The notes: generated by a model not told the origin, from the sequence alone. DNA of 51,082 nt from Macrostomum lignano (GCA_002269645.1 NIVC01004307.1:1-51082), one strand, 5' to 3'. Positions 2,653 to 51,082 are shown, numbered from the stretch's first letter. Numbers and translations are program-made.

Positions 2653-3891
2653 AAACCACTCAATGGCCAGAAAGGGGAGAGAAGTCGGAGAGCGCGTCTT
2701 TAGGTCATGGCTCTAAAAATTCACACCCCATTTTGGTCCTAGGCGCCAGCACCAGTCAAAAGCCAGTCAGGGTATCTCGCCGTTCACCCTTGGTCTCGCC
2801 TGAGCGGTCCCTGTAGCTTGAGCAGCAGCACTTATAGATAACAGATGGATAACAGACAACAGATCAACAGATAATACCCTTAAATTTCCTTACCCTCACT
2901 ACCCTTAACATTTCTAAAGCTCTTAAAATTATTTTAAGCATATTTTGTCCGGCACAGAGTTATATACAAAACTGTTTCCTCATTAAAGTCGACGATTTCT
3001 CGATCCATTTTCACGTTTCCTGAATCACGAGTGCTTTGTAAACAATTTTTTAAGGAAACTGAAATCCCATATTTTCTGGTTTAAAGTTTCACGTTTTACA
3101 ATTGCGTCACAAAAAACATCTTTTTTTGTTAATCCAGCCGGGGCGACCACGTTCAGGGGATCCTGCAGTTTGCATCTTAGTGGCGAATAAAGTCTCTTTC
3201 CCTAAAAGTATTAAGTTTATTTGGGCTCTCTGTCAACTCATATTAACAGAGTTTACGATACAGGGTCCGCAAGTCTCTCAAAGAAAGAGTAAATTCGCAT
3301 TGGTAAGTTCAATCATTTTCGATCAACAAGACGCGCGGGTTTCCCGGTGCAAGGGAATCAACCTCAGAGACAATTGCTGGAAAAGTGACGCATTCAGGGT
3401 AAAGACGCGCGTGATTCTGGAATGATCGCGAATGGACTGCGAATAATATTTCGAAAATCCTCGGGCTACAATAATTCAGAGAAATCGCAGGGTTTTCGAG
3501 TGAATTCACAACAGCAGTAGGGGGCGATGCGCACCTGCCACAGATGAAAGAAATTAAACTTTATCCATGCAAGCTAAACATTTATTTATTGAATAGAAGA
3601 AATATAGCAAAGTTCCAGCAATTCAAGGTTGCAAGTCTCCCAAACATTGTAATCGGCGATTTGTTGGTTACAAAAAATCTAATTGTTATCAACGAATACG
3701 CTTGTATAAAGTACACAGGCCTTTAAGTTTTACTTCCAGACTACGAAATACATTAGAAATTTAAATTTAAGATAGAAACGGTCGATAGCATAAGTGCATT
3801 CACTACTGATAAGCTAATTGTCTCCTTGATAGAACATGGTGCAAAACCACACGGTAGCATCAAGTTATCACATTATGTAACTGCTCTTCAT

Positions 3892-6297
3892 TCATTCGTC
3901 TTTGACCAAATCAACCAACGAAGAGAAGGTTCCTTCAATGCAATTGTTCGAATACGCACTGGCTGCAAATGCACTCGTGACTATGACTGTAAGCACAGTG
4001 ACGAAGATGTTCATCGCAAAGAACACTTTGTCGGCTGACGCTACAACAATGCTGCACTCATTGGTCGTTGTTAGGGGACTTGGCGGGATGTCTCCATCAG
4101 AGCCCTCAGACTGGTCAGCTGTATCTTGTGCAGCATGCACCTGTGGCTTCCTCCCAGTCACGAGTCGGTTGAGGAACAGAGCACGGATCAGCCGGTTGCT
4201 GACGTGAGCGCTGTTGTGCTGCTTGGAGTGACACCTCAGCACGAATGCATTGCACAGCACGTTCAGAATTGTCATCACTACTGCGATGCTGAAGTACCAA
4301 GCTGCAACGGAAATTGTGACCGCATAAGCATACATGTACAGAGATTCGGTCAGCACAACGACCATCTCGCGACTCACTGATGAGCGGCACGGACTCGCTC
4401 TGTGTCGGTGTGTAGTTGCCAGCCAGCTGCAGGAACACGCACATGGACAGCACGATGGTGATGCTGAAGGAGACTCGCTCACCGCAGTCTGGAGGCATTC
4501 GGAATGCGAGTGCGGAGATGGCGAGCAGGAGGATGCTCGGAAAGAGCAGATTCGTCACGTAGAACGCCGACCGTCTCTTAAAAGAAGCAATGAAATAACA
4601 TATTTTCAGATCGATCTGTCCAAATTGTTTCATTTTAAATGCTACCAAGGCTTTTTGAACTCGCAAAACGATCTGTTCAATGCTAATTTTAGCAGCTTGA
4701 GCTGTCTCTAAAGCCATGAGCACACGGTACATGCATAAAATTGAACTAATTTGTGTTTGTATTAATTATTTGATCAAATCCAACAAAGTTGTAGTCCTAC
4801 TTGAAAGGATTTCAATTAGGAACGAGAAGCGAGGCCTTCGTACCAAACCGATCGCAAGAAATATTATTTCGAGCAAGTAAACATGCAACTCAGAAACAGT
4901 TCATCAAGGTCCTTCCTCCCTTCGGCTGTAATGGGTGGGCTAAAATGTGTATTTCTTGTCGAATTAGTATCTATAGGTTGAAAGAGGGCTGCGGGCGCCC
5001 TGGCGCAAAGCCTTCAATGACATTGTCCCACAAGCACTGAGGAAATTTTACTACTGTACACAGGCACGCACTCATACAAGCTCACCCAGGCTGTACAGCG
5101 ATTCTGACTTTCTAGTCGTCAGGCAAGGTGCATTCTCGGTGCCTTGGATGTTGGCCCTAACAGGTTTGAATGGCACGAAAAACTTCGGTTAATTTTCGTG
5201 CACAAGCCAAATGAATGTGGCCACGTACGGAATCGAACACACAGGCGTCATGTCGTGAGAGTCAACACATTTACCTCTGAGCTGCTCTGTAGCAAGTAAA
5301 TGTAATAAAAGTACGAAATAGTTCGTTAGAAAATAAAGTGCACGTGATTCTTTCTTGCCTGAAATTTAAGCACAAGAATAACCGCATCAAGTACGTCCAG
5401 TCGATGCTTTTCCAGAAAGATTCTCTTGATGCAGAATTAGTTGTTCCTTGCCAAGTATTTTTCTGTAGAAAAGTTTTGTAGAAAAAGAATCTTCAACATT
5501 GTCTCGTGCGGTAAATTTTGAGGCCGGATGCTAATGCCGCATTTCTGACTGTCAAACGGAAAATATTGCATCTCCATCTGACACTTGAACGTGACGAGCA
5601 GCACTTTCTGGTGTTGAACAAATCCATCGATAAAAATTAAAGCAGGTGGCTCGTCCAGGGTAACATCCTTTATCTCCATCCTGTAAGACATGGGGAAAAA
5701 GCATTATAAACTGCTGCGAGATGGCGGGCGACAGAAACGGGGCCTCAACTCACAAAGTGTCAACAGTAACATCAGGTATCCACAACAATTTTGAAGGAAC
5801 GGATATGTTGTGCACTCCGCCGAATGCTGAATTAGACATTGCCATCCATGATAGTCGAGAATCGAACCATTGCTACGATGAGGTTTTAAAAGCTTCTAGC
5901 AGGTTATTTTCGTAATTAAATCCACTTAGACAAAAAATCGCTCCCCCCTAATCAATGTAAGCAGGTACTGACCTTCGAAAGCATAAACTGCAGTGTAACC
6001 TCCTGAGACGCAGAGTCCTGCAAGATCGACAAAGACTAGTAATGATTAAATCGATGTCTTGAAGAGCTATAGCAAATATCAACTCACCACTTTGATGAGG
6101 CTGTATAGAAAGATCAACAAGTGTACAGTGTTTGCGGTACCGCTGTCCGGGGGCGGCCGGACCTCCCTGTTGTAATCGGTTCCGAGCTTCAGCGCCGCCA
6201 TCAGAGCAGCGTCCGGCGAAGCTTCATTGGCAGCTTCAGCGGTTGAAGCAGCGAGCAGAGCAGCGAAGGAGACGATGAGGCAACTGGTTGGAACCAT
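3892..6297 (-). pseudogene. Cys-loop ligand-gated cation channel subunit, copy A (nAChR-like, non-alpha), with an in-frame stop in exon 4
   Basis: Exons 6088-6297, 5973-6017 (45 nt), 5754-5872, 5359-5680, 4378-4576, 3892-4301; phases are consistent, 434 aa if read through. Signal peptide, WFDSRLSW, WIPD, Cys-loop CQMEMQYFPFDSQKC, M1-M4 and the GER motif before M2. TAA at 5437-5439 where copy B has GAA. The exon 4 donor is GC where B has GT. Confidence 0.85.
5218..5290 (-). mobile_element. tRNA-derived (SINE-head-like) relic in intron 4 of copy A
   Basis: A-box-like AGCTCAGAGG (5274-5283) and B-box GTTCGATTCC (5229-5238) on the minus strand. A homologous sequence lies at 10516-10580. No clean cloverleaf. 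Confidence 0.4.
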
Positions 6298-6983
6298 GAC
6301 GGACGGAGCGTGGCTGGGTGTGACAGATACAATGAGTGAAATGCTGTACGAATGGATTTTATCGCGTGTATCGACAATTGTTTATTCAGCAAGCAATGTT
6401 CTGTTGTTTGCCTTGTCAAGAAAAGCTTTATTTACTGACTCCATTAGCTTCATTGCCAAGATTGATTGATGCAATTAGCGAATTGCTGCAGTTTAGTGAA
6501 ATTAGTTGTTGACTGAAGCCCAAAATGCTGGTTAAACATGAATTATTTAGGAGATAAAAACTTGCTTCCTGAATAAGGTTTAATTGTTAACTATTTTCAG
6601 CTGAATCATGCTAAAATTTGTTGAGTTAAACAAAGTAATTCGATTGTGCATTTGCACTGTTTGATTAAGTATCCTTCTCGTGTTCGCCTCCGAAAGCAGA
6701 GAAAAATGCAATTATTGCAAAAATTAGCGCACGCAAAGCGCAAATATGAGACGCCATCAGGCTTCAGACAAAAGTGAGTAACACGTGTGCCTCATTCTGT
6801 CTAAACTTATTTGCCGAATTTTAAAGGGAATGAGTAAAAGTGCTGAATGCTGATTAAGTTGTCCTGCACCAATATTGCCAAGTATTTTATATCTGTGGGA
6901 AAACTATTCGCACAACTCAGAGACTAGGGGGGATTTTCAAGTATATTTCTGGCATTTTGCATTTTGCTTTTGCGTTGCACTTT

Positions 6984-7573
6984 GCATTTTGCGTTGCACT
7001 TAAGCTTACGGGCAAATCACTTGATCCTAAGTGGCAGGATTACACTGGCGAGGGCAGCTGCCGATCAAGTCTATGGCCCAAACCGTTGGCTGGCGGGCAA
7101 GTTACTTAAGCCTTGGGGCACTGACTTAATCCATTCATGCTCTATAAAAGCGAACTAGAAGCTAAGGCTCGCAGCAAAATGAGCTCAACATGGTCCATGT
7201 TTTGCTCATTTTGGTCATTGCCAGAACTGTGTTGCAGCTGCTGTTGTTTACTTTCCCACTTTGTTATGGCCAACCAACCACCTGCCGATGTTCCCTCATT
7301 TGCTCATACTTTGCTCATTTGCTCATATGTTGCTCATATTGACCGATTAAAATTATGCCCTTGCCACAGCACCACCCACTGGGCGGCCGATTGAAAGCGT
7401 TTCAAACTGCGATAGAGCATGAATGGATTAAGTCTGTACCCTAAGGCTAAAGTAAATTGCCCATTAGCCACCAGTTGAGACCATAGAATCGATCGGCAGC
7501 TGCCCTCGCCAGTGTAATTCTGCCACTTAGGATTAAGTGATTTGCCCGTAAGCTTAAGTGCAACGCAAAATGC
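6984..7573. mobile_element. MITE/foldback element with ~160-bp terminal inverted repeats
   Basis: 6984-7145 is the reverse complement of 7412-7573 (GCATTTTGCGTTGCACTTAAGCTTACGGGCAAATCAC...CCATTCATGCTCTAT). The interior has short TGCTCAT repeats and no coding capacity. No TSD resolved. Confidence 0.8.
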
Positions 7574-9167
7574 TATATTGTCCATGGGTGGTTAACAGAG
7601 ACAGTTACAGTTACTTAGAAGTACAACACTCGGATTCGTGACTGATTTAATAACCGTTTGGTGTACCGTATCACGCGTTGAATCAGAACCTACTGAATAA
7701 TCCTCTGAACTAGTGGATAATCTGTAAAAATTGGTGGCGTCTAGACCTATTAGCTCGTAACACGCCTTTGAAAACTTCGGCGAGATGCGACACTTCAAAG
7801 TTTCATATTTTGCTTTGGCGAACTGAGAGTGTTGATTATGTGCATGTCGGAAAAGATGCAAGTTGCACCCGTGGGTAACACGTATGTTTTAGCGGAAAGC
7901 GAAACTTCAAGAGTTTTTTCTGGTATTTTTGTTTTCCAATTGTGTAAAATAACTATCAGCTGAATAAATGATAACACATTACGAGCTTAGTGTGAGGGAG
8001 TTGCTCAGAGCCAAAGCTCAAAAAGGGGAGCTGATATCTTAGGCTACACAGCTGGCTTTCAGGGCTGATGCTGTTTTGCTTTAAACATCATTTTCCTCCA
8101 GAAACTAACAACAGTGACTCTACAAGCTCAAAGGCTACATGTAGATTATTCAAAACATTTATTCCATTCTTTATTGCCTCCCTGACGGGGGTAGAAGCTT
8201 GCTAGTTAACTTTCTGGAGTTATTTTTTCCGTTTCGTTGAAACATTTTTAGGTTTTTGTTTTACTGCATGATTTTCTACGCAAGATTTAAATCTGCTTTC
8301 GTTAGTTTTTTACTGAGAGCGCTTGTCGCGCGTTTATAGGCTGTGGACCTCTGCATGTACCGCATCCAGCATAACCAATTAGCTCGTAATTAATGGCATC
8401 GTCAAATAAACTGTCATGGATCAGTTAAATATGTATAAAACCAGTAATTGAACCTCCATTTTTTAATGTACTTATTGCGAGGCAGCATCGACGAAAAGTA
8501 TCCTGGCACACGAACATTATCAAAATTCATCACCTCAGTCCATGGGTAGCTACCGAGTCCCACAAAAAACGAAGCTATGGTGGAAAATTTCACCAAAATT
8601 AGGTACGATATATACGAGATACAAGATATCAGTCAAACTTGAATCCGTTACAAATTTTCAGATGAGCGTGACAAAGAAGTCAGTGAGAAGTGGAACTAGG
8701 CACCGCCTTCCTAGATTTTTACGAGCGTACAAGCGTACAAAAAGTACACGAAAAGTTTCACGTGCACCTTGAGTTAAATACCAAAGCCATATAATATAAA
8801 AAAAGTTTTCCACTCTCACTGACCGAATTCTGATAGGGTCGAGCTTTAATCATGCAGAGCTGCCCCAAATATAAATACTAAAGCATCTATCCATTCTTCA
8901 AATCGTTTCTCTGCCATTTATGTCTGTCAATGTATTGTCAGTGCATCGCTGAGAAACTAGCTCTTTCTCTTTCCCAAGACGCCTCCGAGATCTTGAAAGC
9001 GGAACAAGACTGATTTTTCCAGCATTAGATTTTTCCATGTCACTTTTTAGTTTTCAACGAGTGGAAAGATTATTTATTTACTTAAAATCCTGACCACCTT
9101 TGCTAGCGATGGCAAAATACGCTCGTATTTCTGCACTGGTGCTTAATAGCATTGAAACACGATAAAA

Positions 9168-11584
9168 TTACTCCTCTTTGACCAAATCAACCAACGAAGA
9201 GAAGGTTCCTTCAATGCAATTGTTCGAATACGCACTGACTGCAAATGCACTCGTGACTATGACTGTAAGCACAGTGACGAAGATGTTCATCGCAAAGAAC
9301 ACTTTGTCGGCTGACGCTACAACAATGCTGCACTCATTGGTCGTTGTTAGGGGACTTGGCGGGATGGCTCCATCAGAGCCCTCAGACTGGTCAGCTGTAT
9401 CTTGTGCAGCATGCACCTGTGGTTCCTCCCAGTCACGAGTCGGTTGAGGAACAGAGCACGGATCAGCCGGTTGCTGACGTGAGCGCTTTTGCTGCTTGGA
9501 GTGACACCTCAGCACGAATGCATTGCACAGCACGTTCAGAATTGTCATCACTACTGCGATGCTGAAGTACCAAGCTGCAACGGAAATTGTGACCGCATAA
9601 GCATACATGTACAGAGATTCGGTCAGCACAACGACCATCTCGCGACTCACTGATGAGCGGCACGGACTCGCTCTGTGTCGGTGTGTAGTTGCCAGCCAGC
9701 TGCAGGAACACGCACATGGACAGCACGATGGTGATGCTGAAGGAGACTCGCTCGCCGCAGTCTGGAGGCATTCGGAATGCGAGTGCGGAGATGGCGAGCA
9801 GGAGGATGCTCGGAAAGAGCAGGTTCGTCACGTAGAACGCCGACCGTCTCTTAAAGAAGCAATGCAATAACACTTTTAGGTTGATCTGTACTAATTGTTA
9901 CGTTCAAAAGACTACCGAGGCTTTATGAACACGTGTTCATAAACGTGTTCATAACGTGTTCATGTGTTCACGTAACATGAACGTGAACACGTGTTCATAA
10001 GCGTATGAGCCTCGGAGCAAAAGACTACCGAGGCTTTATGAACACGTGTGAAACGGTCAGTCCACGGGAAGTTTAGCATCATGCACAGGCGCTAAAGACA
10101 CAATCAAACGGTACATTGATGTAAACTATTTTTTGTTTGCATTTACGCTCGTATTGATTAGATCAAATTCAATAAATTGATAATCATACTCAAAGGTGAT
10201 TTCAATTGGGAGCAAGAAGCTCGGCTTCCGAGCAAACCGGTTAGAGAAACATGCAACGCAGAAACAGTCCATGCATCAAGGCGCAAATCCTGCTCTAATG
10301 GGTGGGCTAAAAACGCGTATTTCATGTCGAAAAAGGTTCTATAGTTTGAAAGAGGCCTGAAGTTCCGTAAGGCTTAAGCAGAGGCTAAAGAGAAAAAGTG
10401 GTATAGAATGCCTCAGCCTAGCAAATACGAGCTGAAATAATAATCATAATCTCATAGGGGTGAATCGCACGAAAGCCTTTGGATAATTTAAGTACACAAA
10501 AGCCCCAAATGAATATGGCCTCGCACGGAATCGAACCAGGGTCATGATGCGACAGTCAGACCGTTGAGCTGCTCTGCCCAGTAGCAAGTGTGTGTATAAA
10601 TATTACGAAATCATCCTTAGAAATTATCGTGCACATTTTTTTCTCTTACCTGAAATTTAAGCGCAAGAATAGCTGCATCAACTAAATCCAATCGATGCTT
10701 CTCCAGAAAGATTCTCTTGATGCAGAATTCGTTGTTCCTTGACAAGTATTTTTCCGTAGGAAAGTCTCTGTTGAAATTTGTTTTCAGCATTGTCTCGTGA
10801 GGTAAATTTTGAGACCGGATGCTAATGCCGCATTTCTGACTGTCAAACGGAAAATATTGCATCTCCATCTGACACTTGAACGTGACGAGCAGCTCTTTCT
10901 GGTGGTGAACCAATCCATTGATAAAAATTGAAACAGGCGGCTCGTCCAGTGAAAGGTCTTTTATTCCCAACCTGTAATAGATTGGGAAACATAATTAATA
11001 AATTGCTGCGAGATGGCAAAAGACAGGGGACATCAACTCACACATTGTCGAAAGTAAGACCAGCTATCCAGACCATTTTTGAGGGAACCGATATTCTCCG
11101 CACTCCGCCGAATGACGAATTTGGCTTCGTCAGCCATGATAGTCGAGAGTCGAACCATTGCTACGATGAGGTTTTAAAAGCTTATAGCTGGCTCTTTTCT
11201 TAATGAAACCAATTCGACAAAATATCGCTCTATTTTAATTGATATAAGCAAGTACTGACCTTCGAGAGAGAAAACTGCAGTGTCACCTCCTGAGACGCTG
11301 AGTCCTGCGAAGTTGACAAAGACTACTGCTGATTAAATAAATGTCTTGAAGAGCTATAGCAAATATCAACTCACCACTTTGACGAGGCTGAACAGAAAGA
11401 TGAACAAGGTCACAGTGTTTGCGGTACCGTTGTCCGGGGGCGGCCGGACCGCCCTGCTGTACTCGGTGCCGAGCTTCAGCGCCGCCATCACAGCAGCGTC
11501 CGGCGAGGCTTCATTGGCAGCTTTAGCGGTTGAAGCAGCGAGCAGAGCAGCGAAGGAGACAATGAGGCAACTGGTTGGAACCAT
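9168..11584 (-). CDS. Cys-loop ligand-gated cation channel subunit, copy B (nAChR-like, non-alpha), open ORF of 433 aa
   Basis: Exons 11375-11584, 11260-11304, 11042-11160, 10650-10971, 9651-9849, 9168-9574; all GT-AG and phase-consistent. Cys-loop CQMEMQYFPFDSQKC, PPDCGERVSFSITIVLSMCVFL (M2 with 9' Leu). Compensating -2/-1 indels in the M3-M4 loop. Confidence 0.88.
10516..10580 (-). mobile_element. tRNA-derived (SINE-head-like) relic in intron 4 of copy B
   Basis: A-box-like AGCTCAACGG (10561-10570) and B-box GGTTCGATTCC (10527-10537) on the minus strand. Same intron position as the copy A relic. Confidence 0.45.
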
Positions 11585-13175
11585 GACGGTCGGAGTTTGA
11601 CTGATTGCGACACATCATGAGGGAACAACTTGAGCCAATGGGTTTTATAGCGTGTATGAATAAACTCTAATTCAATAGCAATATTGTGTTGTTTGCATTG
11701 TCACGAAAAGCCTTATTTACTGTGTTAACAAGAGAATATGAAGAATAGAGAACTTAACACTTGGCGCTAGCGCCGCATTGCCAATAGTAGCTACACAAAG
11801 CAAGATACTAGAGTTGAGCACACTTGAGTCTTGTGCCAGGTACGTATTGATTCTCAATTTTATAAAAGGCGGGGTTGACACAGGCTTTAGCCCGGGTTGA
11901 TAAGTTTGCATAATTTGCAATTTACGCTCGTACGTTATAAAAAATTAGAAAGTGGGAGCTGAGAAAGGTGGCTTGAAGTGGAATGGGCCGGTGCACTAGG
12001 CGATTACGAGTGTGAGTAGTATGGTACAGACGTACAATGGTATAAACAAAAACTTTACTCCTCAAACCATACCAGCTTTCTTGGCATGAGCACATTCTAA
12101 TAAAAACAAAGAACCCCTCGACCGTCTTAACGTTGAAATATTAGATATCATAATACCGAGTATCTTGCACGAAAAAAATTAATCGCTACTCGTATAACGC
12201 AATGCTCAAAGAGCGAAAACGGGCATCAAAAAATTAGGTGAAGTAAACAAAGTACAGGGATGAGATAAGTATTAAACTGTTTTAACAAACAGGGTAGGTG
12301 AGTCAAAAAAACGTTGCGTTCAGTGCGAGGAAGTGAGCAAAAGGGAGAAGCGCTGAAAGATAGGAAAAACTATAATCGAACAGAGTATGCCGAAACCTCT
12401 GACTATGGCAAAAAACTTTAGCTTAACCCTAGCATGTAATAAATTGAGTCTTCACAGTAAAAGACTGTTATTACTGATCACAAGACAATACAGAGTTTAT
12501 AATACGGGGTCCGCAAGTCTATCAAACAAAGGGTAAATTCGCATTGGTGAGGCCAAGCATTTGGGATCAACTAGACGCGCGGGTTTCCCGATCAAGTGCA
12601 TCAACCTCAGAGAAAATTTCTGCAAAAGTGACGCGAATCGAAAGTAAAGTAAAAAGTAAAGTAAAAAGTAAAGGCTCGCGAATCGAGAATGGGCTACAAC
12701 TAATATTTCGAAAATACTCTGGCTTACAATAGTTCCGAGAAAATCGCAGGGTTTTCGAGTGAATTCCAAAAAGCAGTAGGTGGCGATGCGCACCCTGCCA
12801 CAGATAAAAGAATTAAAACTTTATCTATGCAAGCGAAACATCCATCCATTGAATAGAAGAAATATAATCGTAGCAAAGTTCCAGCATTCAAGATCGCAAG
12901 TCTTCCAAACACTATCCCAAGCCATATCTTCAGAATTTTGTGTAGAACCGTTTGAATTGCAATGTTAAGTTAAGTTATAGTAGTTACCGAAAGTCTGATT
13001 GCTATCATCCATTTACGCTCGTATAAAATAGACAAACCTTTCAGTTTTATTTCGAGACTACGCAAGATATTAGAAATTTAAGATGAAAACTATCGATAGC
13101 AAAAGTGCCGTCACTACTGATAAGCTCATGGTGCACAGGCGCACCGTAGCATCACGTTATCACGTTTCTCTCCAT

Positions 13176-16100
13176 TCATTTGTCTTTGACCAAATCATCC
13201 AACGAAGAGAAGGTTCCTTCAATGCAATTGTTCGAATACGCACTGACTGCAAATGCACTCGTGACTATGACTGTAATCACAGTGACGAAGATGTTCATCG
13301 CAAAGAACACTTTGTCGGCTGACGCTACAACAATGCTGCACTCATTGGTCGTTGTTAGGGGACTTGGCGGGATGTCTCCATCAGAGCCCTCAGACTGGTC
13401 AGCTGTATCTTGTGCAGCATGCACCTGTGGCTTCCTCCCAGTCACGAGTCGATTGAGGAACAGAGCACGAATCAGCCGGTTGCTGACGTGAGCGCTGTTG
13501 TGCTGCTTGGAGTGACACCTCAGCACGAATGCATTGCACAGCACGTTCAGAATTGTCATCACTACTGCAATGCTGAAGTACCAAGCTGCAACGGAAATTG
13601 TGACCGCATAAGCATACATGTACAGAGATTCGGTCAGCACAACGACCATCTCGCGACTCACTGATGAGCGGCACGGACTCGCTCTGCGTCGGCGTGTAGT
13701 TGCCAGCCAGCTGCAGGAACACGCACATGGACAGCACGATGGTGATGCTGAAAGAGACTCGCTCGCCGCAGTCTGGAGGCATTCGGAATGCGAGTGCGGA
13801 GATGGCGAGCAGGAGGATGCTCGGAAAGAGCAGATTCGTCACGTAGAACGCCACCCGTCTCTGAAAATAACCATACGCATGTGTTGGCCACGGACTACTT
13901 AATTGTCGTTTATACTTAAGTAGTCCGTGGTGTTGGCCTTCATATTTTCATATTATATTATTTATTTTTATATTGTAAATATATTGTGATATTGTGATGT
14001 CTGGTCTGTTGAGTGCTCTTGCAATTTTTCAGTTGTTTTTGCGTGCGCCCTAGGCGGCCATCCCCAGACCAGTTCTGGCTGGTTGGGGGGGGGGCGCTCT
14101 GTCCGGCTGGAGTCTTTCCCCGCAGCGGCCACTGATTGGCTGGGCTTGTGTTTTTGTGTTTTTCTTTTCTAGCCCCTATTCACTCAGATCTGCTCGGCGG
14201 GCACGCTGATTGGCTGAGAGGTCATTTCTTTTGTTTGGCGTTTCTCTCTCTCACGCTGCCTGCCCCTCTACCCTGTTAAGTGGTATACAGTGCTCAAGCC
14301 TGGCCCAGCCAGCTGGCCGCACTCCGCTCCGCGCCCCTCGCCTAGCTCTTCAAACTAAACTAGCGATACTCAAGCGAGTCGTAAAGACGGTGTCTTACTG
14401 CGAAGTCTCTTAATTTTGCATGTGTTACTCAAGCGAGCCGTGTCTAGACGGTCTCTTACTGCGAGGACTCAATTGATTGCGAGCAAATAAAGCGGTCAAG
14501 TGGTAGCGATATTCGAACGAGCCTCACAGCTTCTGGCACCGGTAGGACCCCGAGTTCATTCGCTTCTTTAGCTTTTCTGAGGCCTTGCCGTAGCAGTGGT
14601 TCCATAGCTAGAGCGTCATCACGCCTGCGACTGTGACCACTGCAGCACAGCAGCGTAGTATATTGTGTATTATTGTGGTACTGTACCGGTTACTTTATAT
14701 AGTGTGTACAACCTACAGTATCGAAACTAGAAGCACTCGAGAGTGTCACCACACCTCGAGCCGCAGCGTGAACTCTGAGTGTCACAACACCAGAGGGATC
14801 GAACTATTATCGCAGAGCGTCGCACGCCTGCTCGTATCCATAAAAGTACAGACAGAGCGTCACTACGCCTGTTATATTACGTATAATATATTTTACTCGG
14901 GACTGGGAACCCAAAACGACGCGGGTTACGACAATATTTATGAGTACTGCATGTATAGTATTTTTTGTTTTGTTTATGAATTCGAGAATTTATTTCAAGA
15001 CCCTGTCAATTATATTTAACTAAAGTTTCTACACGTACTTTCCTCTATTGGTCAAAACGTCTATGGCCCATCGCTCGGGCGCAGGCAGAGCACTGAATTT
15101 AAGACACAGTGCAGTTAAATTCAGACAAGTCACACCCACTCTGCAAACGAAGCGAGAGTCCACCAGACGAAATTAAATACAGGATTGGCGTCTCATGGTA
15201 CAGCAGAGAATTGCGGAGTCAGTTGTGGATGCCATCATGGTTGCCAAGAATGCAGCCAAGACTGGTTTGCTCAGCTTACACACTGCGCTTCCTACCCCGT
15301 TGTTTGGCCTGTGAAAACGTCTGATTGAGCACACATATGTTCTGACATTTTAGTCACAGGAACATGATTGTGAGTTTAAAGTCTGAATTGAACTGTTTAA
15401 ATTCAGTTTTAGCCATAGAAAATAGAATTTGAAAAATTTAATTTCATCTATACGAATCAATCTAGGTTTTCTATGGTTTTCTATGGTTTTATGGTCCGCT
15501 GAATGTTTAAACTCTTAGATAATATTATGATATTAGTGTCTAATAGTACTATTATTGTGCCATAGACATTTGTGTCCTTGACAAAGTGGGACAAAATTAG
15601 CGGACAGTTAATGACATTAACTGCCCGCTAATTTGAATTGAAGTAAGTTTGACTCCTACAAGCGCGCTTAAATGTAGTCTATGGCATTAAAAGGCAAGAA
15701 TAAGTGCCCAGCGGGCACAAAGGTCATGGTACACACTGCTGCACTGTGGTGACGCACTGCGACCGCTGATTATTTATAGCTCGGACATAGATTTTTTACT
15801 GTTTTACGATTCTTCTTACCTGAAACGTAAGCAGAAGTATCGGCGCAGTTAGAGCATCTATATTAAATTTCTTTAGGAAAACCTTCTTGATGCAGAATTC
15901 GTTGCTCTTTGACAAGTATCTTTCGACAGAATATTGTTTGTCAAAAAGTAAGTTGAGCGCCGTGGTGGCAGGTGTTTGAGACCGGATGCTAATGCCACAC
16001 ATCTGACTGTCGAAAGGAAACAGGTGCATTTGCATTTGACATTTGAAGGTCACGAGAAGCACAGTACTATGACGAAGCCATCCAGCTGCACTGATCGAAA

Positions 16101-19100
16101 CAGGCGACTCGTCCAGCACAACATGCTTCATCTCCACTCTGCGTTCGAAGTTCGAAGCACATTTTTACTTTGATGATGTCAACAGGTTAAAAAACTTTCG
16201 TCAACTCACACAGTGTCGACTGTAATAGCAGGTGTCCAAACCATTTGAGGCGGAACCCAGAGGGGAATGGTGGTGTCCAATGTCCGATTAGGCGTTGAAT
16301 TCCACACCAGTCGCGAATCGAACCAATGCTACAGAAATTTACAGAGAATTTCGACATGTACATGTGAATTCGTGTTGCTCGTAAAGATACGAGAATTGTT
16401 CTGATGCTAGAAGAATAGAAAATACCGAAAGACCAGCTGTACTGATAGGTCGATTTTGATCTACAATCCAGTACCTGTCAAATTTTGGCTTCATAGGACC
16501 CGCCAATTCTGATCCCCGTTAGGACTTTCTATCCTAACTCAATCGACTGGTTGTTCCACACAAAAAAATATTGTTACTTTGGGGCCAGGATCTTTAGCCG
16601 AGGTATTTTTAGTTGGATTTTTCCGTGCTTTTTAAATTTATGACCGCACCTGTCAAGTTCCTATGGTGTCTAAGAGGTCGCCCGGTGCAGAGGATTTTCA
16701 GGGTCTGAAAGCTCAGCCAATCAAAATCAAGCTAGTCATTCCGGGCTCGTCCAATCAGAAAATTCGACGCTTGGTATAACAATTTGGCCACTGGAAGGAT
16801 ATTCAAGGCCGGCCTGGCTCTCGAAAACGTTGTTTATCCGGCTGTCGGTCTGATAACCGGGTTGGATAAACCACCGTGCACATGCCCGCTCGAGACGCTG
16901 CAGCTAAGTACCCCGAAAGCGCCGGGTTAACGTCGATGAAACGTCCTCTGCAAGCTTTAGACTCCCTGGATCTAAATCATCTTAGAGCAGCAGCAGCACC
17001 CTGCTGTCTTTGTCACAGTGGATTTCTTGGCCACCAGCAGCTTGAAACTCTGATTGGCTGAGAAGCTTTCTTGACCTGCTCTATCGGAGCGCACTTGTTT
17101 TCCGTTTTCCGAGCCCTTTGCACTTTTACTTATTTGCTTTCATGTGCTGGGAAAATTGCTTATTTACTCCAACACAATTTGAAAGAAGTGTGAATTTAGG
17201 AGAAAAACCAGATCGTATCTCTCTCTTTTAAGTTCGATCTTTCTTTTTAGCCTTGCTAGCCACGATGAGTGGCTGTAATTTATTGAGTCGAATGTCACAG
17301 CGGAACGAAGCATTGCAGCCTCCTTTCACTTAACCTATCAATCAGTCAGATTCCGAAATCAGGGCAAACCATTTGCCAGGGGTGTACTTTTGTGCTGTCC
17401 CAGGCGGCAAAGCAGCAGGAAGGAATCATTCAGAGTTAGTCTAGGGATCTCTTGAAGGCTCTGATAGTTCTGCCATCAGCACCATTTACAGACCAGTGGA
17501 CAAATTTCAGGCCAAAAGCGAGCAAGTACATATACTCAGCAACAGTCGAAAGTTCCACCCTCCAAGCGAGATTAATTTTTTCCACTTTGCGAGCGACGCA
17601 ACTTAAGGCACGCGCAAAGTTTATTGCCACTTGGGGTGGCTTGGGTCTCCTTAAATGTCCAGGATGACAACGCGCCGCCACACCGAGTCGATGGTGTTAG
17701 TCAACTGAAAGAACAGCTACAGCTGCGCACTCTGCGCTGGCCTTCCCGGTCCCCCAGACATGAATCCCATCGAGCATGTCTGGGACTTCCTAAAATGCAG
17801 CATTCGAAAAGAGTTATCCACCACAGAATGTTGTGGAGCTGCGTCATACCACTGAAAAGGCTTGGCTGCAGCTTACAAAGGACGCCCCGCAGAGTCGCCG
17901 CACTTCTGCGTGCGAGGGGATCTCGCATGCGTTATTAAGCAACGCGATTCTGACTGCGTATTGCATAGAAATCAAACTGTTATTTTCCCTTCCTCGCGGC
18001 GGCCCACGAGTAGTGGCGTAACTTGAGGGTTGAATTGTGAGTGAAAAGTTGTCGCAATAAGTGATAAAATTTTCATCTCGCTGCTTGGAGAGTGAAACTT
18101 TTGACTATTGCTGAGTATAAATTGAGCATTCATTGGTGCATAGAGAATCGCCAGCACAAGAACCCCCCCCCCCTGCAAAAGCCCTCTCTGTCCCTGCATG
18201 GTCAGAGTGAGATACCGTACGACTGAGAGTTGACGAAGCTGCTTGGCGTTTATTATACTCAGCAACATTGAAAAGTCGCCACTCTATGCGCCAGTGAGCA
18301 ATATTTCTCTTGGACTATTCTGAATTAAAAGAATTCAATGAATTCAATGAGAAAACTGATCAGGGTAGCTTTAATCCGTCCAACCCTCGCACACCGCTCC
18401 CCTCACTTCATTCTTCAACTCAAGTCTGCCGCGGCGTAGCTAAGTTGCGTCACTCGCAAAGATTGAGAGACTTTACCTGCACTCTCAAAAGTGGCGACCA
18501 CAGACGGAATCTTCTGTGATGACGAATTTTCGATGTTGCTGAGTATAGATCGATACGCAGGTTAAATGCGATACAACGACTGTCGAATAATCGGGTATAG
18601 ACGATAGAGACAGAGGGTGAGTGGAAAGCACGTACATACTGTGAAATAGCAACTCCCAACCCCCGCTCTAGCGACTAGCGCATACAAGTACACTTGCAAC
18701 TCACTGCCCATTGAAGCCGCTATGACTTCGAGGTTGGCAGCAAAAAAGAAACCGGTTCGCAGGTTGTCTCAGAGCCCCTTCTAGTCGGAAACCCGATTTC
18801 CAGAGGCAGCGGGTTGGTGGCAGCGGGTTTAGTTTGATCTCTGGATTAGCTGATTTCAACTTTTTTTTCCAATTCTCCCTGCTTGTCTCTCGCTGTCCTC
18901 TCTTAGCTATCGGGGACCCAGCCGCTTGTATCTTCGCTACCTGGGGCTGACTGACCGTCTGACGGGAGAGAGAGCTCAGTGATTAATTTCTGCACTCCGA
19001 GGCCCAAGAAGTCTCCTCCGATCAAAGTGCTGAACCATCACTTAGACAAATGCGAATCGCCTCGCGATCACGAATTACGAGTGAAAATAACGTCTTAGTC

Positions 19101-19502
19101 ATGCGACTTAAAACTAAAATCTCCGGATTTACTGGTTTTAGTACACAATATTATTAAAACAAATTATTTTCTGTAGTTACCTTCCCGAGTAAAAACTGCA
19201 GTGTCACCTCCTGAGACGCAGAGTTCTGAAACATTCAGTGGATACTTGCTGTAAATTCATGTCCGGAAGAGCAACGACGAAGATCAACTCACCACTTTGG
19301 CGAGGCTGTACAGAAAGATAAACAAGTTCACAGTGTTTGCGGTGCCGTTGTCCGGGGGCGGCCGGACTGCCCTGTTGTACTCGGTGCCCAGCTTCAGTGC
19401 CGCCATCACGGCAGCGTCCTGTGAGATGTCATTGGCAACTTCAGCGGTTGAAGCAGCAAGCAGAGCAGCGAAGAAGACGACGAGGCTACTGAGAGAAATC
19501 AT
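13176..19502 (-). CDS. Cys-loop ligand-gated cation channel subunit, copy C (nAChR-like, non-alpha), open ORF of 433 aa
   Basis: Exons 19293-19502, 19181-19225, 16210-16328, 15820-16138, 13662-13860, 13176-13585; GT-AG and phase-consistent. WFDSRLVW, Cys-loop CQMQMHLFPFDSQMC, GER-M2. Introns 2 and 4 are enlarged by repeat insertions. Confidence 0.88.
13989..14912 (+). mobile_element. Unclassified interspersed repeat (LTR/TIR-like, CCAAT boxes, AATAAA at 14486-14491) in intron 4 of copy C
   Basis: Segments 13989-14237 and 14595-14912 match 19962-20569 in reverse orientation; the six-frame track shows the same spurious MTTAAQQRSILCII... peptide at both sites. Confidence 0.7.
17660..17938 (+). 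mobile_element. Tc1-family DD34E transposase 3' fragment, frameshifted and internally deleted
   Basis: QDDNAPPH...WPSRSPDMNPIEHVW after removing one extra C in the C-run near 17750. There are 34 residues between the second D and the E. Typical Tc1 C-terminus RRVAALLRARGSRMRY*. Confidence 0.85.
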
Positions 19503-19961
19503 GACGGACGGTGTCGGACTAATTGCGGCGAGCGCTAATATAAAATACGGATCAGTTTAATAGCCACCAATGAGCAGTCCTTAACCCCGCATTAATTGTG
19601 CAAACACAAATGGTCCAGTATTTGCTTTGCCTGAAATTATCGTATTTGCCCGACTCAATTAGCTGATCAGAGAGCTCGAACAGACTCAGCAGCTATGTCC
19701 TGTAGTTGAGTGAACTGACTCACAGGCTGGAGACCTCACTGTATGCTGTGCAAATATAAATCTGCTGTCGATATGCAGAGTCTCCTCTATGAATAAATGG
19801 CTTTCGGTTATCTTCTGCTAATATTAAAGTTGCTGACTCGAAATAATGTGCAGGTCTCTGAATTGTATCCAATGTCATTTTCGCTCTTCTATTGTAAAGG
19901 TTTTCCTGCTTAACTGTCCTCGTCTGCCCCAACAGATACTAAAATGACTGGATGGGCCTGG

Positions 19962-20569
19962 AGTGCCCAGTCCATGGTACAGTAGGTTATACGTAATATA
20001 GCAGGCGTAGTGACGCTCTGTCTTGTACTTATATGAATACTGTACAAGCTGGCGTGACGACGCGATAATAGGTTGCTCCGTCTGCTGTTGTGACACTCAG
20101 AGTTCACGCTGCGGCTCGAGGTGTGATGACACTCTTGAGTGCTTCTAGTTTCGATACTGTATGTTGTACACGCTATATAAAGTAACCGGTACAGTACTAC
20201 AATAATACACAATATACTTCGCTGCTGTGCTGCAGTGGTCACAGTCGCAGGCGTGATGACGCTCTAGCTATGGAACCACTACAAAAAGAAACGACCCCTC
20301 AGCCAATCAGCGTGCCCACCGAGCAGATCTGACTGAATGGGGGTTAGAGCGAAAAACACAAACTCACAGGCCCAGCTAATCAGAGGTCGCCGCGGGTAGA
20401 GAGAAAAAAAACACAAGTCCAGCCAATGAGTGGCCGCCGCGGGGAGACTCAAGCCGGGCCGGCGACCCCCTACCAGCCAGAACTGGTCCGGGGATGGTCG
20501 CTTAGGGCGCATGCAAAAACTCAAACGACCAAGTGCAAGAGCACTCAACAGGCCAGACACCACAGTATA
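19962..20569 (-). mobile_element. Second, inverted copy of the 13989-14912 repeat, lacking its central ~360 bp
   Basis: Reverse-complement match; the two segments abut at ~20280. Confidence 0.7.
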
Positions 20570-20914
20570 AATACTAAGTTTTTGTAATTTTGAAAATATT
20601 CTCTCTTAGAGCTAATTTGCAAAATAATCTGAACACCAAACTCTGGCCATTGTTTTATCCCTTTCACTGCTATCAATATTTGTAAAAGAAGAGCTTCGGA
20701 GCTAATAAATTTGGTGTAGCAAGAGCAGAAAATATTACTGTTTAAGAAAATAGAATTACAGGAGTCAACGTTGACTTGCCAGCCTCTTTTTCCATTTTCC
20801 TTTTATTTTTCCCGACATTTTGACAGAAAAAGATGTAGCTCATATGTTAGATACGCTCGTATAAAACTGAAGGCGAAAAATCGAGATCATAATTATTCAT
20901 AAGTTCCTTTCATC

Positions 20915-22321
20915 CTAGAGCTCGCCAAGGCAGTTAGTATTAGATTTTACACAGAAAATAGCAAATTGCACGACCATCATTGCGACTCCGAAGCTGACAA
21001 ACACTTTAAAGAACACCCGGTCAACGGAAGATCCGACTGTCTTCCATCCGTTGGAAGTCTGAGATGGCGATACTTTGTCATCCGCATCGGCTTCAGTGCG
21101 TGTGACTCTCCGCTCAGAGTTTTCTCCGACAACGAATCGGTTGAGGAAGAGTGCACGGACGAACCGGCTGCTGACGCTGCTCGTCTGTCTGAAGTGACAG
21201 CTGAGAACAAATGCGTTGCAGAGCACATTCAGAATTGTCATGAGCACGGCCAAGCTGAAGTACCAGGCTGGAATGTGAAGCGTGTCAAATTCGGATCAAT
21301 TTCTCCAAGGCAATGCGGTAATAGAGATACTTCGAGGTACTCACTGATGAACGGCACGGACTCGCTCTGTGTGGGCGTGTAGTTGCCAACCAGCTGCAGG
21401 AATACGCACATGGACAACACGATGGTGATGCTGAAGGAGACTCGCTCGCCGCACTCGGGAGGCAGACAGAAGGCGAGCGCGGAGGCTCCAAGGAGAAGAA
21501 TGCAGGGCAGCATCAGGTTTATCATGTAGAAAGTCGGAAGTCGCTACAATTACAAATCCTGGTCCATTATTTTATGGGTGTTAACATTATCCCACGAATT
21601 ACTCATATTACCAAATTTCGGACAAAAACTCACCTGAAATCCGACCCGGAGCACGGCTGTGTCATAGAAGCCAAACAACCAGTTTTCTAACCGGACCCAC
21701 AGAATGCAGAACTCGCTGCTCTTCATGACGTACCCAGTCGGTGTATCATTCTCATTCAGGGACTTGATGCGGATTCGAGTCGATCCTGTGACTTGCTGCA
21801 GACTCGAGAGCCTGACTAAGCAGTTTTGTTCGTCAAACGGGAACAGCTGCATTTGCATGCTGCACTTGGTGGACAGAGTCATTCCGGTGCTCTGTAGCAC
21901 AATGCCTGATGACATCACCGAAAGTATCGCGCGGCCTTTCGTGGCATCTAGGAGCTCAACTCTAGATTAAATTGTTTTAATGAAAACAATCATGACGGAC
22001 GGAGTTATAATTATACTATTTAACCAGTTTATTACTTTCTGAAAGGCGCAGCTATTTAGCTTCAAGCAGAATTGGCTCACACATCGTAAAAAGATGCGTC
22101 AGGTTGCCACAGGTACGAAGCTGGAAGGGTGATTGCGTGGATATGGTCCAGACTGGAGTTGAACTTTTCTTTCCAGGCCAAGCGACTGTCGTTCCAGTGC
22201 CGCAATAACAACATGAATTGCAGCTAGCATCAAAGCTCTGTAGGGAAACTTCAAAGACAACATTCTATGAGCTTACCAATAGCAGCCACACCTTTAGTTG
22301 TATTTCCTGATTAGTGGAATC
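20915..22321 (-). CDS. Cys-loop ligand-gated cation channel subunit, copy D (more divergent, more canonical ECD); first exon(s) not located
   Basis: Exons 22277-22321 (DSTNQEIQLKVWLLL), 22081-22199 (HWNDSRLAW...LWQPDASFYD), 21634-21961 (Cys-loop CSMQMQLFPFDEQNC), 21345-21543 (M1-M2, PPECGERVSFS), 20915-21267 (M3-M4). Intron phases match A-C. The homologous exon 3 acceptor reads GG instead of AG. Confidence 0.8.
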
Positions 22322-23460
22322 CTAAAAATCCTTTCAGAATATTGTGCAACTCATTAGGTATGCCAATTAATGAAACTGTCTGAGACTGTCGATTATACGA
22401 GTATAAAGACCATTGGATCTTAAAATCTTAGTTAAACCATCACAAGGACCTTCAAATTATCAGTTTGCCCCAACAGTCGTTAAACTTTGGGAATAACAAC
22501 AACAATAACAGAATAACAACAAGTCACAGGGCGCGCCTCAAGGCCAGGTCGCGAATGAAAGCCGCGCCGCCGGCCGAATCCGGGGCGCCAGCGTCAGCCA
22601 ACAGGCAGTCGACGAAACGCCTAGTGAGGGCCGTGCGGTTGTAACGGAATGCAAAGTAAAGTTCCGAATCTCGGCAAGTTAGCAAGCGGACTCTAGAACA
22701 AACCAACTGTCTGTTTCAAATGAAGGACTGTTGGGCCAGCAGGTTAGAACTTTATGTTTGCTGAGGTTCAGAGTGCGTCAGCTATCCAGTCAGGCGTCAT
22801 GAGTTTGCTCGCGATCCGACAAAGGAAATTTGGAAGGAAACCAGTCTATTTACTCAGCAGAGATTCCCTCAGCCGGCTTCACACCGCTGCGCGTTGCCAC
22901 AGAAAACTTTTTGGTGCAAATTATTTTCTAATAGATATATTTGTCCAGTCCTGAAGCTATGTGGGGCCCAGGACATCATTCGCGAAAATTTTGTCACGGT
23001 TACAGTAAATGACTTATCTAATTAGTGTAAGAGCGTTTTATGCATATGCTAGGTACGAGGGTTGTCCCAGAAATAGCGGGAAAACCGATACAGAGGCTGA
23101 CTGTGATTTTCTAATTTGATGCAACTTGCTTCAAAAGTAAAAAAAAATCCAACGGTTGTTTTGCTTTTTAAATGGGGTAAAAATGTCAATTCATTCAAAA
23201 GTTATGCCTTTTAGTAGCAGGACGGTCTCGACCACCACCTGGAAAAGCCACTGCCTGGATGGAGCGCTCTGGCGGTAGGGCCTCGGACTGCAGGACTGCC
23301 CTCATAGAACGAAAGGCAGTCCAGCCAAACCCACTGCGACGCCGCAGATCCTCGTGAAGGTCGAAAACCAAACAGCGGAGGTAGACGAACTGCTGATATC
23401 ACGACAATTCTTTCGCCTGTCCGCCAGAGCTTCGGCACTTTAAAAGGTGACCGTAGATGG

Positions 23461-25320: not shown

Positions 25321-51082
<25,762 letters not shown>

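Follow-up and report, generated by a model that had tools for sequence, protein, structure and literature searches.

The Cys-loop receptor array

The stretch of DNA analysed here (the window) comprises 51,082 nucleotides of the flatworm Macrostomum lignano (GCA_002269645.1, NIVC01004307.1:1-51082). At 3892-22321 it carries four head-to-tail paralogs of Cys-loop receptor subunit genes, designated A to D, all on the minus strand. Full copies consist of six exons of 210, 45, 119, ~322, 199 and ~410 nucleotides (nt), and their introns are GT-AG apart from the lesions described below. The models were assembled by hand from the reverse-strand sequence, with each junction checked. Gene A (3892-6297) has six exons at 6297-6088, 6017-5973, 5872-5754, 5680-5359, 4576-4378 and 4301-3892. 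Gene B (9168-11584, 433 amino acids) has six at 11584-11375, 11304-11260, 11160-11042, 10971-10650, 9849-9651 and 9574-9168, and gene C (13176-19502, 433 amino acids) has six at 19502-19293, 19225-19181, 16328-16210, 16138-15820, 13860-13662 and 13585-13176. Gene D (20915-22321) is represented by exons 2 to 6, at 22321-22277, 22199 (or cryptic 22223)-22081, 21961-21634, 21543-21345 and 21267-20915. A tblastn search with all models found no fifth copy within the window.

In Pfam, the C and D models match Neur_chan_LBD at E 1e-27 and at 1e-19, and both match Neur_chan_memb (E 1e-21), above the gathering threshold in each case. These same-strand paralogs, with their Pfam domains and a Gly-Glu-Arg (G-E-R) pore motif, bear out an earlier interpretation made from the DNA alone (the sequence-only reading), which had proposed that cation-channel subunits of the Cys-loop type are arranged here in tandem. 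Its count of four copies holds for the paralogs present, but only C is intact.

Binding site, pore and fold

Key residues were read from an L-INS-i alignment of A-D with Torpedo alpha1 (100% identical to PDB 6uwz_A), human alpha7 (likewise to 9j37_A) and mouse 5-HT3A; a second, larger alignment agrees. The aromatic box of nicotinic acetylcholine (ACh) receptors (nAChRs), formed by Y93, W149, Y190, Y198 and W55, is entirely missing from A, B and C (0/5), and three of the five positions are kept in D. Given in the order A/B/C/D, Y93 reads D/D/D/Y, W149 reads Q/Q/Q/L, Y198 reads L/V/L/Y, and W55 of alpha7 (the position of W55 in Torpedo gamma) reads M/S/L/W. The two box residues missing from gene D are W149, replaced by Leu, and Y190, whose position has gone with a shortened hairpin. 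The vicinal pair C192-C193 is missing from all four copies, and E45 is Ser throughout (S/S/S/S). Position 149 corresponds to W183 of 5-HT3 receptors; in these and in nAChRs, the loop-B Trp supplies the cation-pi contact.

The alignment reproduced every residue call that the sequence-only reading had made in A-D (W55, E45, Y93, W149, C192-193, Y198, the pore and a short M3-M4 loop). Its statement that the canonical ACh box has been dismantled also stands, since W149 is gone from all four copies and none of the five aromatics survives in A, B or C.

Loop C (the beta9-beta10 hairpin) is reduced as well, spanning 27 residues from the W176 position to R209, compared with 34 for Torpedo alpha1, 33 for alpha7 and 32 for 5-HT3A. 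The short loop C (27 residues) and the missing vicinal Cys192-193 are common to all members of the wider family described below, and the loop-B Trp149 is found in no core member versus 45 of ~70 outgroup units. The loss of the loop-B Trp and the shortening of loop C by 5-7 residues are ancestral to the whole family, with Y93, Y198 and W55 lost in addition in A, B and C. The Asp of the loop-A WxPD motif is missing from B and C.

The remainder of the subunit is that of a cationic Cys-loop channel. All four copies have the equivalents of C128, C142, FPFD and R209 (the pre-M1 Arg), with a Cys-loop of 15 residues, and the signal peptide, the WxDxxLxW motif, the M1-M4 segments and the M2-M3 Pro are further elements that have been kept. 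The pore of A-D presents G-E-R at -2'/-1'/0' with no Pro insertion, Leu at 9' and Val at 13'. G-E-R occurs in all core paralogs and is replaced by G-D-R in the outlying members P0011 and P0077, and L9' and V13' are invariant across the family. The M3-M4 linker of A-D measures ~60 residues. An AlphaFold2 model of the family member P0011 (pLDDT 85, pTM 0.74) has four long helices besides the strands expected of the fold; a Foldseek search of the PDB with this model returned nAChR and 5-HT3A chains at TM ~0.7 and does not separate the two.

A family-specific feature lies at the start of beta9, where A-D have Phe in place of W176 in the 'GEW' motif, followed by an invariant Cys. This Cys, placed after 'E-F/Y', is found in all family members and in no other sequence of the sample (in gene C its codon lies within 15820-16138). 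A second Cys follows M4 at a distance of 4-8 residues in every complete member, in the contexts NNC, TNC, TDC or SWC (for example 'NNC' near 13230 in C). The pair was observed in A-D, P0002/P0007, P0008, P0009, P0011, P0077 and P0158, and in no other pentameric ligand-gated ion channel (pLGIC) of the sample. Its distribution suggests a putative disulfide that would tie the post-M4 tail to the extracellular domain (ECD).

A family known only from M. lignano

A profile built from P0001-P0003 and searched against 1.84 billion representatives yielded 11,451 pLGIC relatives. The top group consists exclusively of M. lignano proteins (P0002, P0003, P0007, P0008, P0009, P0011 and P0077), to which P0158 was added by a separate search. 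The next matches reach 130-165 bits per domain at ~25-30% identity and come from molluscs, a brachiopod, an annelid and hagfish 5-HT3A. A count of the family, one of the checks that the sequence-only reading had called for, gives ~15 distinct members in at least three arrays once fused models are split. No description of this clade was found in the literature, where M. lignano ligand-gated ion channels (LGICs) have so far only been lumped as 'nAChR-like' (PMC6881066).

Placement was assessed with a neighbour-joining tree of 86 domain units and 295 columns, rooted on bacterial homologs and bootstrapped 100 times. The core family forms a clade with a bootstrap of 98, within which A, B and C group at 99 and join the D/P0002 group at 90; the whole family, including the outliers P0011 and P0077, is recovered at 76. 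All close relatives whose source was looked up are M. lignano sequences, and the lineage-specific expansion that had been proposed is upheld by this clade, which appears to be known only from M. lignano.

The label 'nicotinic-type' was less well founded and is not settled by the tree, which places the family as sister to 5-HT3 in 35 and to alpha7 in 22 of 100 bootstraps. Comparison with solved structures is similarly divided: C scores best against 5-HT3A (125 bits, E 2.8e-35) and then beta2 (112 bits), and D against nAChR beta2 (123 bits), followed by alpha4 and alpha7 and then 5-HT3A (101 bits). Chains of nAChR, 5-HT3A and DEG-3 are among the 60 best PDB sequence matches of C and of D, and those of cephalopod chemotactile receptors (CRs), ZAC and Alpo4 fall outside these 60. 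The suggested origin independent of cephalopod CRs is consistent with this ranking; the tree itself contains no CR sequence. Grouping with ordinary non-alpha subunits, which the sequence-only reading had named as evidence against itself, is not seen in the tree, where the family is a clade of its own. Within the cationic nAChR/5-HT3 branch, the family is best regarded as an apparently separate lineage, restricted to Macrostomum as far as sampled, that would belong to neither family proper.

Gene conversion and selection

A conversion tract covers exon 5, intron 5 and exon 6 of A (3896-4663, minus strand) and matches B at 9172-9933 and C at 13183-13866 with 96-97.5% nt identity. Between A and C it runs on into the 3' flank (3246-4589 against 12490-13873). 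Among A, B and C, exons 5 and 6 are 97-99% identical and the 76-nt intron 5 is 100% identical. Identity falls to 79-87% between A and B in exons 3-4, and to 61-67% between either of them and C; over all exons, A and B are 79-99% identical. By the Nei-Gojobori method, the synonymous divergence (dS) of A or B from C is 0.83 in the ECD exons and 10-25 times lower, 0.03-0.08, in exons 5-6 (with the frameshifted stretch of B excluded).

The near-identical pore of A, B and C is thus a recent product of gene conversion and not an independent sign of constraint. Purifying selection alone was considered as an explanation and is ruled out by the equally invariant intron. A 'conserved' pore had been reported by the sequence-only reading: the cationic motif is indeed present in every copy, but the identity of A, B and C overstates constraint on account of conversion. 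Gene D provides a better measure. Its exon 5 is 81% identical to those of A, B and C at the nt level, with a ratio of nonsynonymous to synonymous divergence (dN/dS) of ~0.2, so that the pore is truly conserved over the longer term too.

Divergence is strong in the ligand-binding exons 3-4, on which purifying selection has been relaxed yet real. The dN/dS of the ECD is 0.39-0.43, and since this is below 1, the ECDs have been constrained over most of their history. With three sequences, a site-wise analysis of positive selection has no power.

Integrity of the four copies

Gene C is the sole fully intact copy in the array of the window and has consensus splice sites. Exon 4 of A contains an in-frame TAA (5437-5439, minus strand) where B and C have GAA (Glu) in a conserved 'NNEFC' motif. 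The same exon ends in a GC splice donor (5357-5358, minus strand), reading 'gcaagaaa' in A against 'gtaagaga' in B, with GT in B, C and D. The window copy of A is probably a pseudogene. An alternative genetic code in which TAA is read as sense was ruled out by the standard stops in the other copies and in all neighbouring genes.

When the exon 6 sequences of A, B and C are aligned as DNA, B shows an out-of-frame stretch (9422-9492, minus strand). A deletion of 2 nt (between 9492 and 9491) lies at one edge of it and a deletion of 1 nt (between 9423 and 9422) at the other, 70 nt apart. The deletions put 23 codons after M3 out of frame, after which the frame is regained, and the open reading frame (ORF) is open throughout. 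The affected stretch wipes out the conserved post-M3 motif 'S.R.IRALFLNR'.

Gene D is a 5'-truncated pseudogene in the window. Its exon 1 was not found in the window: tblastn and six-frame scans for family motifs recover exon 1 of A, B and C alone. A 5' relic persists upstream at 22533-22625 (minus strand), where tblastn matches the segment directly preceding exon 1 in the paralog P0158 (74% identity over 31 amino acids, E 3e-11). Because only 211 nt separate this relic from exon 2, exon 1 (210 nt) and intron 1 must have been deleted or replaced. The relic, which translates as 'TRRFVDCLLADAGAPDSAGGAAF', has outlasted exon 1 of D; from its match in P0158 it appears to be a conserved 5' element of D-type genes, whether leader, upstream exon or promoter-proximal sequence.

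The canonical acceptor of D exon 3 is likewise damaged, reading GG instead of AG (22200-22201, minus strand), with the canonical junction seen in P0008 ('...WFNL|YW') and P0158 ('...WFSL'). The only in-frame alternative is a cryptic TAG acceptor 24 nt upstream, which would add eight amino acids (LQFMLLLR) to beta2. The W55 of D rests on the 45-nt exon at 22277-22321, which is followed by this exon with the GG acceptor. The description of D as the least derived member is not supported as it stands: D is a truncated pseudogene here, and P0003 retains Y93 and Y198 too (its partial model does not include the W55 position).

Functional interpretation

We consider it likely that the locus comprises four tandemly arrayed subunit genes undergoing birth-and-death evolution, members of a cationic Cys-loop family that is known only from M. 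lignano and would have left the ACh/5-HT site behind. The subunits retain the elements needed for folding, pentamer assembly and coupling of the ECD to the transmembrane domain (FPFD, the pre-M1 Arg and the M2-M3 Pro), together with a Leu-gated cation pore. Given the missing loop-B Trp, the truncated loop C and the lack of an aromatic box in A, B and C, canonical gating by ACh or 5-HT is very unlikely, and the pentamers would not respond to ACh or serotonin through the canonical aromatic box. Another stimulus may act at a remodelled, more polar inter-subunit pocket, which carries the loop-A Asp and the loop-B Gln, or elsewhere on the protein. Within the array, conversion homogenises the 3' half of A, B and C, and the ligand-binding exons drift apart.

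Several observations weigh against this explanation. Lesions affect three of the four window copies (A, B and D), and the indels of B could be errors of long-read assembly instead of true lesions. Core-family proteins are known only as ab initio UniProt models, with none in the transcript-based GenBank annotation of Mlig_3_7, which does include P0011-type genes. Expression of the core family may accordingly be low, very restricted or absent, although this annotation gap does not favour any one of the competing explanations. The taxa of the tree were picked by similarity to the family, a possible source of bias in its placement relative to nAChR and 5-HT3. Cation-pi contacts can shift to other loops in some Cys-loop receptors, and an amine ligand may still act, mostly on D-type members with Y93, Y198 and W55.

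The strongest competing proposal, which has a substantial though less than even chance of being right and is compatible with the others, is that the array copy in the window is mostly a decaying, redundant duplicate without present function, with any function carried by copies elsewhere. The nonsense codon and GC donor of A, the frameshifted segment of B, the loss of exon 1 and of the exon-3 acceptor in D, and the repeat insertions in the introns of C all fit such decay, as does the failure to find transcript-based gene models for the core family. A further point in its favour comes from P0001 (UniProt A0A1I8H7M4), a chimera that is >90% identical to B and then continues into exon 4 of A. Its B part has no frameshift and its A part reads Glu at the position of the window stop, so that a second, unlesioned B-A segment must exist elsewhere in M. 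lignano. The genome is partly duplicated, and such a second copy fits both the published redundancy of the M. lignano assembly, in which blocks of at least 95% identity add up to 180 Mb (PMC5730564), and the presence of the outlying member P0155 on three contigs. A look-up by exact product found no contigs for P0001, P0002 or P0003. Against decay stand the full intactness of C with its consensus splice sites, the two mutually compensating deletions that keep the frame of B open, a long-term dN/dS below 1, and the chance that some lesions are assembly errors.

Two proposals about function seem about equally improbable, though both deserve consideration. According to the first, the one favoured by the sequence-only reading, the proteins would be chemosensory receptors in peripheral sensory cells, gated by environmental or conspecific chemicals, in an independent transition like that of cephalopod CRs. 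A lineage-specific tandem expansion with pseudogenes, indicative of birth and death, would be expected of such receptors, as would ECD exons that diverge far faster than the pore and a dismantled transmitter site with a short loop C; scarcity in whole-animal transcript sets would suit expression in few cells. The contrast between pore and ECD is, however, mostly a product of gene conversion, and the ECD dN/dS is ~0.4, obtained from three sequences, too few to detect positive selection at individual sites. Similar expansions of nAChR-like genes in bivalves have been tied to development, stress and immunity instead (PMC6896357). A fuller version of the scenario, to which we would give somewhat less credence, has a transmitter-gated ancestor that dropped its aromatic box, cut back loop C, gained the new Cys pair and may now serve as an environmental or conspecific chemoreceptor or an ion sensor. 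If true, neurotransmitter receptors would have been turned independently into sensory ones a third time, the other two cases being ionotropic receptors (IRs) and cephalopod CRs.

The second holds that the subunits are accessory (structural) ones that bind no ligand and would join conventional subunits, either alpha-type nAChR or 5-HT3-like, in heteromers whose gating by ACh they modulate, a role for which vertebrate beta1, delta and epsilon and 5-HT3B-E are precedents. The missing vicinal Cys pair and principal-face aromatics agree with this role, as do the best PDB match of D, the non-alpha subunit beta2, and the complementary-face W55 kept in D-type members. That same W55 is gone from A, B and C, however, and B and C also lack the Asp of the loop-A WxPD motif. 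The family forms its own clade with no grouping with ordinary non-alpha subunits, and its invariant Cys at the start of beta9 and truncated loop C suggest a distinct mode of assembly.

Least probable is gating by ions, by protons or otherwise without an organic ligand through acidic or polar residues, by analogy with ZAC (Zn2+, Cu2+, H+) or nematode PBO-5/6: a truncated loop C, as reported for ZAC (PMC11536092), a site that in A, B and C has an Asp in loop A and a Gln in loop B, and the retained cationic pore would accommodate it, but ZAC lies outside the 60 best PDB sequence matches and no metal-binding His/Cys/Glu cluster was identified.

Significance of the array

Lineage-specific expansions of nAChR-like orphan genes are a recurring and poorly understood feature of lophotrochozoan genomes, and to our knowledge cephalopod CRs are the only ones among them with an assigned function. 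The birth-and-death array described here offers a compact and well-resolved flatworm example, in which a fully dismantled transmitter site is combined with a clear conversion tract that splits a homogenised pore from diverging ligand-binding exons, and in which neighbouring genes represent every stage from birth to death. M. lignano is amenable to transgenesis, and expression and function are therefore directly testable. Should a non-transmitter ligand be found, it would add to the known routes from synaptic receptor to sensor.

The gene models also correct the fused or truncated database entries A0A1I8H7M4 (B plus exon 4 of A), A0A1I8JJA1 and A0A1I8GX25. The public models P0001 (A0A1I8H7M4), P0007 (A0A1I8JJA1), P0008 (A0A1I8GX25) and P0009 (A0A1I8GVX6) are fusions of tandem neighbours that omit the 45-nt exon 2, and one of them is joined to a C-type lectin region. 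As they stand, these models should not be used for phylogeny or expression studies.

Repeats and neighbouring genes

Repeats have enlarged two introns of gene C, intron 2 to 2852 nt and intron 4 to 1959 nt. Inverted copies of one repeat, 73-89% identical, lie at 13989-14910 (plus strand) in intron 4 of C and at 19963-20568 (minus strand) between C and D, where they flank exons 1-4 of C and could promote inversion or rearrangement of this segment. Intron 2 of C contains an ORF (17624-17938, plus strand) with a 'DDNAPPHR ... WPSRSP' motif, which resembles a degenerate C-terminus of a Tc1/mariner transposase; a Pfam search of this ORF gave no match at E < 0.01.

Exons of a voltage-gated calcium channel alpha1 gene (30851-49980, minus strand), with the Pfam domains Ion_trans, GPHH and Ca_chan_IQ, directly precede the array in the same orientation. 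GC-rich, low-complexity ORFs at 25321-27666 may represent the C-terminal tail of this channel. Long micro- and minisatellite blocks lie in or near the calcium-channel gene, at 38200-38760, 40600-41700, 43500-44650 and 50180-50700, and yield spurious long ORFs of repeated peptides. Outside the window, the outlying member P0155 (BOX15_Mlig024351) is encoded as the same exact product on NIVC01000984.1, NIVC01003722.1 and NIVC01003094.1, with no LGIC neighbours, and serves as an example of the two- to three-fold redundancy in the GCA_002269645.1 assembly.

Comparison with known systems

With nAChRs (Torpedo alpha1, human alpha7 and beta2) the family shares its fold, topology and 15-residue FPFD Cys-loop, a 45-nt exon for the beta1-beta2 segment, the G-E-K/R motif, the 9' Leu and the 13' Val, and sequence matches reach E-values of 1e-27 to 1e-34. 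It differs from them in the missing Trp149 and vicinal Cys192-193 of core members, a loop C that is 5-7 residues shorter, Ser in place of E45, and an M3-M4 loop of ~60 residues with no long MA helix; nor does the tree nest it in the alpha7-like or muscle-type clades. The resemblance to 5-HT3A includes a near-identical 'PPD(S/C)GERVSF' M1-M2 segment with Arg at 0'. 5-HT3A is also the most frequent single sister group (35/100 bootstraps), an affinity that lacks bootstrap support. Unlike 5-HT3A, the family has no loop-B Trp183, a shorter loop C and no long MA helix.

Like the family, ZAC is a cationic Cys-loop channel whose loop C is unusually short; its agonist is not a transmitter (PMC11536092). 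It is, however, a vertebrate family, and no specific sequence affinity to it was detected among the 60 best PDB matches. The orphan receptor Alpo4 of Alvinella lacks the vicinal Cys pair and lies between nAChR and 5-HT3 (PMC10338036). Unlike the Macrostomum family, Alpo4 retains an aromatic cage (F103, W159, Y199, Y205 and W65).

Molluscs and annelids offer well-documented cases in which nAChR-like orphan genes have undergone large, lineage-specific tandem expansion (PMC6896357). The expanded mollusc genes are mostly intron-poor retrocopies, whereas the Macrostomum genes keep six exons, and the bivalve and annelid surveys left out flatworms. Cephalopod CRs are nAChR-derived, lineage-specific, tandemly expanded cation channels that have lost ACh binding (PMC11526382, PMC10338036). 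They resemble the family in their type of expansion and in a loop C that is short relative to nAChRs, according to the comparison, including CRT1, in the ZAC study (PMC11536092). They belong to another phylum and a separate clade, and their function and sensory expression are experimentally established, whereas the Macrostomum family is known here from its sequence. What is new is the flatworm array; its kind is already known from the orphan nAChR-like expansions of lophotrochozoans. Its fuller loss of the site, short loop C and family-specific Cys pair could, if confirmed, make it a distinct variant of these expansions.

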